This document shows positions 9,359-11,101 of a stretch of 64,000 nucleotides of DNA, piece after piece. This DNA comes from Chrysemys picta bellii. Taxonomy: Eukaryota. Location: the NCBI RefSeq assembly GCF_011386835.1, contig NC_088797.1:33790001-33854000 (forward strand), given 5' to 3'. How positions within the stretch are numbered: the stretch's first letter is position 1; each line of letters starts with the position of its first letter. The position numbers and the translations under genes are program-made. Under the pieces are notes generated by a model, which was not told the origin of the DNA, did no database searches, and saw nothing but the letters and a program-made list of their open reading frames with translations.

Positions 9359-10064
9359 ATGTCGGAGGCAGTGCTGTTGCTGCGGCGGGTGCGGGAGCGC
9401 AGCAGTGAGGGGGGAACGGGGGCCCGGAGGAAGCGGAGCAGGCGGCGCCGTTTCTACCCTGAGCACCGGGTATACCGCGCCCGCAGCTCCTTCCTGGACC
9501 TCAGCGAGGAGCAGGTGCTGCGGCGCTACCGTCTGGACAAGGCAGCTATTGCGGGGCTCTGCAGCGAGCTGGGCTCTGACCTGGAGAGCCTGACAGGTCG
9601 CAGCCACGCCCTGCCGGTGGCCGTCAAGGTGACTTCGGCCCTCACCTTCCTGGCTTCAGGCTCCTTCCAGACAGCCACACGGGACACTACAGGCATCAGC
9701 CAGTCAGCCATGTCCAACTGCCTGGCCCAATTCCTGGAGGCACTGCAGCGCCGGGCTGCCCGCTACATTACCTTCCCTGTCCCAGTCCCCACGGCAGGGC
9801 ATGCTGAGGGCCGCTTCCCTGGGGTGCTGGGCCTGCTAGGCAGCATGCATGTGGCGCTGCGGGCCCCCTCAGAAAACGAGCTTGCCTACCGCAATGCCCG
9901 CAACTACCACTCCATGAACATGCAGGTGGTGTGTGATTCCCATGGCACCATCATCAACGTGGTGGCCAAGTACCCTGGCTCCTGCCCCAACGCCGCCGTG
10001 CTGGAGAACTCTGCCCTGGCTCGGCTGCTTGACGGAGCCCGGCTTGACGGGCTGTGGCTGCTGG
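9359..10064 (+). CDS. Harbinger/PIF transposase-derived (HARBI1-like) protein, exon 1 of 2
   Basis: ATG at 9359; basic stretch RRKRSRRRR; RVYR..FLDLSEEQVLRRYRL; HTH-like ALPVAVKVTSALTFLASGSFQ..GISQSAMS; FPGVLG..HV, NARNYHSMNMQVVCD, KYPGS, WLLG motifs. Donor CTGG|gtgagt after 10064, phase 1. Confidence 0.9.
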
Positions 10065-10700
10065 GTGAGTCAGGACAGACAATGATGCTCTGGGGGGTGG
10101 GCAACCAGAGAGGCCTCTCCATGGTGGAGCAGCCCCCTGACCCTGTTCACCGAACATAGTGATCCCTCACGCCCGGCACCTGGCGGGATAATCTGTATCG
10201 CAGCATGACTGACAATAGGTAAGAAGGATGGTCCAGGGAATAGGGTGCTGAGTTCAATTCACCACTCTGCCACTTACTTGCTGTGTGACCTTCAGCAAGT
10301 CACTTAATCCCACCCTGTGCCTGTAAAAGGGACTTCTCTGCCTCACGGGGGTATGTGGGTAAAATGGTGAGGTGCTTGTACACTAGGCTCATCTAGAAAG
10401 ATAAGAGCTGTAACTGCTCCCAGTGTGAATACGGAGCAGACTTAGACTCTGGTAAGTACTTAGCACACAGGTACCTTTCAGCAATGAACAGTCCATTGAC
10501 TGTAATGGGACTACTTAACGTGTTTAAAAATGTGCGAAGATGAAGATCTAAACTATGTGTGGTCTTTAACAGCGCATTATGGGGCTGGGGTGGGAGTGCT
10601 TTGGTTTCATTTCCCCCAAAGAAAGGTGGGAGCTCAGCTTCCAAAGGCCTGGGGGAGTCTGTGCTAACATATTTCTTCTATCCTCCTTCTGTGCCTGCAG

Positions 10701-11101
10701 GAGACCGAAGTTACCCGCTGAAAACATGGCTCATGACTCCAATTTTATTCCCATGTAGTCCGGGAGAGGAGAAGTACAATGCCATGCACCAGGAGGCCCT
10801 CTCGGTGCTCAAGCAGACATGCACCCTATTGAAAATGCGTTTCCGCTGCCTGGATAAATCAAGTGGCTCCTTGCAGTACACCCCCCAGAAAGTCTGCCAG
10901 ATCTTCCTGGCCTGCTGTATACTGCACAACATCGCCCTGAGCCGCAGGATGCCCTTAGACCTGGCAGAGGGGGAGGAGCTGGTGGAGGGGTCGGATGCTG
11001 ACCCGGAGCTCCCAGTGCAAACCCCCTTTGTTCAGATCTCCAGTGAGGCCCGGGCAGTGAGAGCGCGAATTGTGCAACGATTCAGAGAGAGCCTGACTTA
11101 G
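10701..11101 (+). CDS. Harbinger/PIF transposase-derived protein, exon 2 of 2 (spliced product 368 aa)
   Basis: Acceptor ccttctgtgcctgcag| ends 10700. Continues G-DRSYPLKTWLMTP...YNAMH...LKMRFRCLDKSSGSLQYTPQKVCQIFLACCILHNIAL; TAG at 11099-11101. 706+401=1107 nt, in frame. Confidence 0.9.

Follow-up and report, generated by a model that had tools for sequence, protein, structure and literature searches.

Does the genome of Chrysemys picta bellii hold a second host gene made from a Harbinger transposase, or is the Harbinger-like gene at positions 9359-11101 of the DNA analysed here the turtle's copy of HARBI1, or even an immobilised transposon? The DNA in question, called the window in what follows, is a stretch of 64,000 nucleotides of contig NC_088797.1 (positions 33,790,001 to 33,854,000 of the forward strand), and an earlier note made from its letters had described the gene as intact, predicted to be nuclease-dead and apparently distinct from HARBI1. 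A 2022 study gives HARBI1 as the sole transposase-derived Harbinger gene of vertebrates, with NAIF1 and MSANTD1-4 derived from the Myb-like gene (PMC9392472). We use the name HARBI1L for the gene in the window. Taken as a whole, the best explanation, and one that we consider very likely, is that HARBI1L is an old, separate, non-catalytic host gene of Harbinger origin. Vertebrates would then have a second transposase-derived Harbinger gene, concealed by the automatic label 'putative nuclease HARBI1'.

HARBI1L has two coding exons on the plus strand, as read from its open reading frame (ORF) and translation. Exon 1 (9359..10064) starts with the ATG at 9359, holds residues 1-235 and the first base of codon 236, and encodes a basic stretch resembling a nuclear localisation signal (NLS), a helical N-terminal domain and the first half of an RNase H-like core. 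Exon 2 (10701..11101) holds residues 236-368 and the stop codon (TAG, 11099-11101) and encodes the second half of the core and a C-terminal helix. The sole intron (10065..10700, plus strand; GT at 10065-10066, AG at 10699-10700) is in phase 1 and falls within the Gly codon preceding D237. The spliced coding sequence (CDS) of 1107 nt, or 368 aa, contains no stop and no frameshift. Both exons match Pfam DDE_Tnp_4, with 42.3 and 45.5 bits against a curated cut-off of 24.8, and together cover profile positions 3-69 (exon 1, residues 162-225) and 81-158 (exon 2) of 158. The intact spliced frame with a DDE core that the earlier note had reported was thus recovered in full, and the NLS-like segment that it had seen is RRKRSRRRR, residues 23-31.

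The catalytic columns were read in an alignment of 86 sequences, comprising HARBI1L and 85 relatives from an exhaustive search. The four columns are D/D/D/E in about 50 of the 86. At the first catalytic Asp position, where most of the aligned sequences have D, the turtle protein has G161 (LLGSMHV; codon GGC, 9839..9841, plus strand, like the three codons that follow), and at the Asp of the GSxHD motif it has N211 (GSCPN; codon AAC, 9989..9991). D237 (GDRSY; codon GAC, 10703..10705), the second Asp, is the sole triad residue kept, and the catalytic Glu position is occupied by K273 (VLKQTC; codon AAG, 10811..10813). These are exactly the assignments made earlier against the family consensus. With G161, D237 and K273 in place of an intact D-D-E triad, HARBI1L is homologous to PIF/Harbinger transposases and, judged by these residues, is not a functional transposase. 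The prediction that it is nuclease-dead is well supported by the sequence.

An AlphaFold2 model of HARBI1L, computed with 51 aligned sequences as input (predicted local distance difference test, pLDDT, 88; predicted template modelling score, pTM, 0.86), places an RNase H-like beta/alpha core after a helical N-terminal domain. In the model, G161 lies on the first strand, D237 just past strand 233-235 and K273 on helix 256-282. The top structural matches were human, bovine, rodent, frog and zebrafish HARBI1 (template modelling score, TM, 0.76-0.80; 31-37% identity), of which human HARBI1 was the best (TM 0.80, 37% identity). Arabidopsis ALP1-like (TM 0.73) and ALP1 (TM 0.71) came next, then IS5-type transposases, and comparison with the PDB gave weak matches to integrases and transposases.

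The features of a mobile Harbinger element were not found at this locus. The window contains one copy of HARBI1L by tblastn, no convincing terminal inverted repeats (TIRs) flank the gene in the window, and no ORF of at least 75 aa between HARBI1L and the next gene gave a Myb/SANT or other Pfam match. The inverted-repeat and Pfam scans therefore bear out what the earlier note had reported by eye on both counts. What was found are the marks of a domesticated transposase: a conserved locus, purifying selection, and transcription with splicing. The gene order RBM4-like / HARBI1L / CCDC87-like / CCS / RBM14 is the same in turtle (including Mauremys), emu and eagle; the loci of swan and finch, which are partial, are consistent with it. 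The RBM4-like neighbour was found at the emu, eagle and finch loci, the downstream order is the same in emu, eagle and swan, and there is one syntenic HARBI1L locus per genome in five species. We take this locus to correspond to the human 11q13 CCS-RBM14 region.

Six transcript contigs of ~3 kb, from sequencing runs of a Mauremys-like turtle, carry an uninterrupted 1107-nt CDS with untranslated regions (UTRs) and without the intron. They align to the window at ~8929-10065, skip 10066-10688 and resume from 10689 to ~12765, which gives ~430 nt of 5' UTR and ~1.65 kb of 3' UTR. The 5' UTR extends at least over 8929..9358 (plus strand), four contigs (L003-L006) being continuous from 8929-9119 into the CDS, and the 3' UTR at least over 11102..12765 (plus strand), where the contigs L003-L008 align to 11102-12618/12765. 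We take the six contigs as spliced mRNA. Fourteen sequencing runs, presumed to be of RNA, contain 68-85% of the sequence words of this stretch, which fits spliced RNA and is no proof of it. Fixed at its locus, transcribed, spliced and vertically inherited, HARBI1L is a bona fide host gene. Compared with the window and with the Mauremys genome alike, five of the six contigs have 2 nt in place of a 63-nt stretch of the 3' UTR (window 11667-11729). The remaining contig seems to read through this stretch, which has no GT-AG boundaries; a bubble in the assembly or unusual processing may explain the difference.

Purifying selection on HARBI1L is strong, most of all on the helical N-terminal domain. 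A Trachemys/Chrysemys protein matches the window protein exactly, another 13 turtle proteins, equal to it in length, show 1-14 differences over the 368 residues, and the 90%-identity cluster also takes in a pleurodire protein of 369 aa. Ratios of nonsynonymous to synonymous substitution rates (dN/dS, or omega; NG86 estimates only, with bootstrap confidence intervals, CIs) were 0.02 for turtle against Mauremys (dS 0.12), 0.10 for turtle against emu (bootstrap 95% CI 0.07-0.14), 0.12 against eagle and 0.16 against swan. Among emu, eagle and swan they were 0.18-0.19. The bootstrap CIs lie well below 1. Between turtle and emu, residues 31-135, which make up the helical N-terminal domain, have a dN of 0 at a dS of 0.53. 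Omega is about 0.085 in the RNase H-like core, and constraint is looser in the N-terminal tail, the 136-155 linker and the acidic C-terminal linker. In a comparison of eight species that spans coelacanth to birds, conservation is again highest in residues 31-120.

The finch Lonchura gave dN/dS values of 0.27-0.48, which were dropped as an artefact of a gene model that reads exon 1 through into the intron. For the same reason the Lonchura protein P0024 does not represent an intron-less gene: its exon 1 is read through, and exon 2 is missing from the locus. In passerine orthologues (P0024, P0056, P0366) the first helix and the basic stretch are separated by an inserted low-complexity N-terminal segment of ~90-150 residues with a high content of H, R, D, Q and E.

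HARBI1L orthologues were found, by word-indexed and by exhaustive searches of proteins, in turtles, crocodilians (alligators and Crocodylus), and ratite and neognath birds. Further orthologues came from a caecilian, with 72% identity over exon 1, and from the African lungfish (62%) and the coelacanth (55%). By this distribution the gene dates at least to the sarcopterygian ancestor, which makes it more than 400 million years old, and older and wider in its occurrence than one genome suggests. The same protein searches returned no mammal, squamate or frog member of the group, although these clades are densely annotated, and HARBI1L was therefore probably lost in all three. For mammals this would be a clean case of gene loss, possibly relatable to lineage biology.

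The four catalytic positions have decayed differently in each lineage. Reading the first Asp, the GSxHD Asp, the second Asp and the Glu in turn, HARBI1L has G, D, N and E in the coelacanth (GDNE), D, N, N and K in the lungfish (DNNK), G, N, D and Q in the caecilian (GNDQ), G, N, D and K in the turtle (GNDK), and G, N, D and R in a crocodilian (alligator) and birds (GNDR). Each lineage thus keeps one triad residue, which differs between lineages, and no carboxylate is common to all; among these lineages the GSxHD Asp is kept in the coelacanth only. Lineage-specific loss of the triad on a conserved scaffold is what would be expected had the common ancestor already been able to do without catalysis, with the fold retained for another purpose. 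The gene can be seen as a natural experiment, in which the fold and the N-terminal domain are almost frozen and the catalytic residues decay along separate paths. This combination argues that animals, like plants, for which this has been shown, can retain the body of a Harbinger transposase for non-enzymatic work.

How does HARBI1L relate to HARBI1? HARBI1, or Harbinger transposase derived 1, is reportedly referred to Kapitonov and Jurka 2004. Like HARBI1L, it is a vertebrate host gene derived from a Harbinger transposase, with a similar length, a DDE_Tnp_4 domain, a similar predicted fold (TM 0.80), and a single copy with conserved synteny. The two proteins are 37% identical in the structural alignment and 43% identical over residues 42-320. 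A search with pig HARBI1 returned canonical orthologues at 64-85% identity from chicken and other birds, squamates, a monotreme, a caecilian, frogs, coelacanth, lungfish and ray-finned fishes. HARBI1 and HARBI1L occur together in Rhinatrema, Protopterus and Latimeria, and birds have the two genes as well. In the chicken, HARBI1 and an ATG13-domain gene stand head-to-head; the HARBI1 locus is that of ATG13/AMBRA1, in contrast to the CCS/RBM14 region for HARBI1L. Whereas HARBI1 keeps D, D and E and the GSxxD Asp in all sampled species, HARBI1L keeps one triad residue, and unlike HARBI1 it has a basic N-terminal stretch of its own. HARBI1 occurs in all jawed vertebrates including mammals (PMC9392472), whereas HARBI1L was found only in some sarcopterygians.

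A maximum-likelihood tree was computed for 64 proteins, including 11 HARBI1 and eight HARBI1L sequences. The two genes form separate clades, with support of 100/100 for HARBI1 and 100/95 for HARBI1L, and each clade reproduces the species tree; within HARBI1L the order is coelacanth, lungfish, caecilian, turtle, then birds. The sister of HARBI1L is an intact-DDE protein of Rhinatrema (99/93), and both lie, apart from HARBI1, inside a clade (95/94) with a sturgeon Harbinger transposase and a group rich in sharks and rays. Joining HARBI1 and HARBI1L costs 60 log-likelihood units and is rejected by an approximately unbiased (AU) test (p = 0.017). The sturgeon relative, from the sterlet (L013:10001-12769), has an intact triad, an 87-nt intron and a convergent downstream Myb_DNA-bind_5 gene, and its locus is unrelated to that of HARBI1L. 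Vertebrate Harbinger elements of this kind are the closest sequence relatives of HARBI1L, at 46-51% identity; their intron sits where that of HARBI1L does, and like it they carry the N-terminal motif RR.YP..R.YR.R..FL(D/E)L..(E/M)(E/Q)V. They keep the DDE triad and the convergent Myb_DNA-bind_5 gene, whereas HARBI1L has neither and sits at a fixed locus. Sinzelle et al. 2008 reportedly used an active vertebrate element, Harbinger3_DR. The sterlet unit itself is flanked by long (AT)n tracts and lies beside an NGLY1-like gene, with no TIRs defined; it may be a mobile element or a co-domesticated pair.

The phase-1 intron in the Gly codon before the second Asp is common to HARBI1L, chicken HARBI1 and the sturgeon element, with boundaries at window 10064/10701, L015:10670/12244 in the chicken and L013:10697/10785 in the sterlet. 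Emu HARBI1L has the intron at the same position and in the same phase, and the exon-1 boundaries of eagle and swan fit the same position. The intron was probably already in the transposon lineage before domestication. If so, gene structure cannot separate two captures from a duplication. Collectively, the separate clades, the AU test and a sturgeon relative that is a classical Harbinger unit make capture of HARBI1L independently of HARBI1 the better reading of these sequences.

We propose that HARBI1L was domesticated from a PIF/Harbinger transposase, separately from HARBI1 and at the latest in the common ancestor of lobe-finned fishes and tetrapods, and that the protein would no longer cut DNA. 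It would act through its conserved N-terminal DNA- or partner-binding domain, with the RNase H-like body as a scaffold, and would pair with a Harbinger-derived Myb/SANT-trihelix protein as a nuclear, non-catalytic adaptor. The basic stretch at residues 23-31 could permit nuclear import independently of the partner. In the rice Ping transposase, the N-terminal half suffices to bind the C-terminal region of the Myb-like protein, and the Myb-like C-terminal region is also the reported transposase-binding site in ALP2, HDP2 and NAIF1; for ALP1, neither half alone binds the Myb-like partner (PMC7282668). Vertebrate HARBI1 binds NAIF1 (Sinzelle et al. 2008, as summarised in PMC9392472). Since the N-terminal half of HARBI1L is its most constrained part and that of Ping binds a Myb-like protein, we infer that HARBI1L functions as a non-catalytic DNA-binding or adaptor protein, perhaps with a Myb-like partner. 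MSANTD3 is the sole Harbinger Myb-like-derived gene that arose at the sarcopterygian node, ~430 million years ago, and is absent from ray-finned and cartilaginous fishes (PMC9392472). Its origin at the same node as HARBI1L makes it a speculative candidate partner. It is conceivable, though rather doubtful, that the two were co-domesticated from one Harbinger element in the sarcopterygian ancestor to form a nuclear, non-catalytic DNA-targeting complex, and that the transposase half was later dispensed with in mammals, squamates and frogs. HARBI1L may offer a way into the question of what the HARBI1/NAIF1/MSANTD network does, and is a candidate partner for an orphan Myb-like gene.

Comparable systems are known outside vertebrates. 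Arabidopsis ALP1 and ALP1-like, HDP1 and HHP1 are likewise domesticated Harbinger transposases that serve as protein subunits with a co-domesticated Myb-like partner, in PRC2-associated, histone acetyltransferase and HDA6 complexes (PMC4671723, PMC7282668, PMC5339849). They differ from HARBI1L in that they stem from independent domestication in plants, have 20-22% identity to it, and have a demonstrated role in chromatin complexes, which for HARBI1L is hypothesised. The Drosophila DPLG genes are another case in which PIF/Harbinger transposases have repeatedly been turned into conserved single-copy genes (Casola et al. 2007; PMC9710019). In contrast to HARBI1L they arose in insects by independent events. 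HARBI1L is not categorically new, as dead domesticated Harbinger transposases such as ALP1 and HDP1 of plants were already known. Some of the Drosophila DPLG genes have degraded catalytic motifs.

Other accounts of the origin of the gene have to be weighed against independent capture. In public annotation the HARBI1L models go by 'putative nuclease HARBI1' and, for some bird sets, by 'ALPL protein', and by the first of these names the gene would be the turtle orthologue of HARBI1; failing that, it could be an immobilised or decaying transposon copy. The occurrence of both genes in three species, the position of chicken HARBI1 at the ATG13 locus, the identity of 37-43% and the separate clades contradict orthology, and synteny, low dN/dS and a spliced mRNA exclude decay, so that both accounts are refuted and retain practically no probability. 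An account that asks for more care is a single domestication followed by an ancient duplication that gave rise to both HARBI1 and HARBI1L. The two genes are alike in architecture and fold, their intron has an identical position and phase in chicken HARBI1 and HARBI1L, which also fits descent from one ancestral gene, and the deep Harbinger branches are short, with some of them left unresolved (support of 73/88 for the basal split). The same intron, however, occurs in the sturgeon Harbinger element with its Myb-like ORF and is thus probably transposon-derived. HARBI1L groups with intact-DDE proteins at both supported nodes to the exclusion of HARBI1, the AU test disfavours a joint clade, and a gene found only in sarcopterygians contrasts with one that is in all jawed vertebrates. 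A single domestication is therefore unlikely in our view. On independent capture, the evidence agrees with the separate domestication proposed by the earlier note: a fixed locus, no dispersed copies, a clade that follows the species tree and is not that of HARBI1, dN/dS of 0.02-0.19 and spliced mRNA.

Two further accounts concern what the protein does. HARBI1L could still be an enzyme, acting as a nuclease or recombinase through D237 and non-canonical residues or as the catalytic partner of another subunit, and the strong constraint on the RNase H-like core, together with retention of D237 in all tetrapod orthologues, would be in keeping with this. Yet two of the three carboxylates are missing in every lineage. 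Lungfish and coelacanth have N in place of D237, the lungfish alone retains the first Asp and the coelacanth alone the Glu, and in amniotes the Glu has given way to a basic Lys or Arg. As the carboxylate that is kept differs between lineages, there is no shared catalytic set, and we regard residual catalysis as highly improbable. The earlier note had also raised the possibility of a dominant-negative repressor that poisons active Harbinger transposases. A dead transposase with DNA-binding and multimerisation surfaces is the classic form of such a repressor, and intact-DDE Harbinger relatives exist in caecilians and sturgeon. Birds, however, keep the gene under strong constraint (omega 0.18-0.19 among birds and 0.10-0.16 against the turtle), while PIF/Harbinger elements were not found in birds or mammals by one survey (PMC4482050). 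Vertical inheritance at one locus for over 400 million years and a near-invariant N-terminal domain suggest a cellular target rather than an arms race. The evolutionary part of the earlier interpretation, a domesticated gene distinct from HARBI1, stands, and its repressor part is weakened to the point of being very unlikely.

Some observations weigh against a separately captured, non-catalytic adaptor, besides the shared intron. The group submitted to the AU test was defined only after the tree was seen, and the loss of catalysis is read from sequence alone. The expression contigs come from a related turtle, with the library type unconfirmed and the tissue unspecified, and the missing mammal, squamate and frog genes reflect protein databases, not genome searches. 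A seed search with the Myb_DNA-bind_5 exon of the sturgeon element retrieved no relative, and complex prediction for HARBI1L with residues 85-170 of the sturgeon Myb-like C-terminal ORF, used as a proxy partner, gave a score of 0.00, which is evidence neither way.

Full-text searches returned no paper that describes HARBI1L as a distinct gene; their coverage is incomplete and a prior description is possible. Further HARBI1-like proteins turned up in other vertebrates. Sharks of two orders have a single-exon HARBI1-like protein, at least 90% identical between them, that reads DDDK through replacement of the Glu by Lys (whale shark L014:10001-11134; P0061, P0215-P0218). The whale shark gene adjoins a G-protein-coupled receptor gene rather than CCS, and it therefore probably represents a separate domestication in sharks. 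Rays have another HARBI1-like protein, with the first Asp replaced by Gly (P0060, P0214). Lineage-restricted HARBI1-like proteins that are conserved across genera also occur in sturgeons (P0072/P0368), tarpons (P0096/P0369), and ranid and mantellid frogs (the P0065 and P0067 clusters), and the triads of these proteins have decayed to GDDE, GDGM, DNGD and GNDE. Caecilians of three genera (P0064, P0220, P0221) carry a third HARBI1-like protein, at least 90% identical among them, with an intact DDE and distinct from both HARBI1 and HARBI1L. As conserved, triad-decayed proteins occur in sharks, rays, sturgeon, tarpon and ranid frogs, recurrent domestication of Harbinger transposases in vertebrates may be commoner than described. 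A repeated origin of triad-decayed HARBI1-like genes in vertebrates, if real, seems not to have been described before.

The genes around HARBI1L served as anchors for the synteny comparison. Upstream and divergent lies the RBM4-like gene, whose first coding exon (7583..8098, minus strand) encodes two RNA-recognition motif (RRM) domains (Pfam RRM_1, E = 8.6e-34). The downstream neighbour is a single-exon ORF of 916 aa (15318..18068, minus strand), followed by CCS and RBM14. We presume this ORF to be CCDC87-like from its position, its length and the human gene order; no tool match stands behind the name. At locus L001, a 913-aa product adjoins a Sod_Cu/HMA gene. Exons encoding RRM domains or zinc knuckles lie at window 7583-8098 (minus), 25919-26542 (plus), 36286-38004 (plus) and 58431-59162 (minus), and indicate the upstream RBM4-like gene, RBM14 on the downstream side and, on the minus strand close to where the window ends, a second RBM4-type gene.

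The 5' UTR of HARBI1L apparently lies within a GC-rich promoter region (GC content 0.61 over window 8001-10000), head-to-head with the RBM4-like gene. The distance from the RBM4-like ATG to the furthest HARBI1L transcript end is ~830 nt, and this spacing of a divergent pair suggests that the two genes share a promoter region. A perfect 16-nt inverted pair containing a CCAAT motif occurs at window 8845-8860 and 13297-13312. It was considered as a pair of TIRs and set aside, because HARBI1L has been fixed at its locus since before the turtle-bird split, and it is read instead as a promoter-type motif or chance. The copy at 8845-8860 precedes the outermost 5' end of any transcript contig by ~70-85 nt and is possibly a promoter element; the copy at 13297-13312 may be there by chance.

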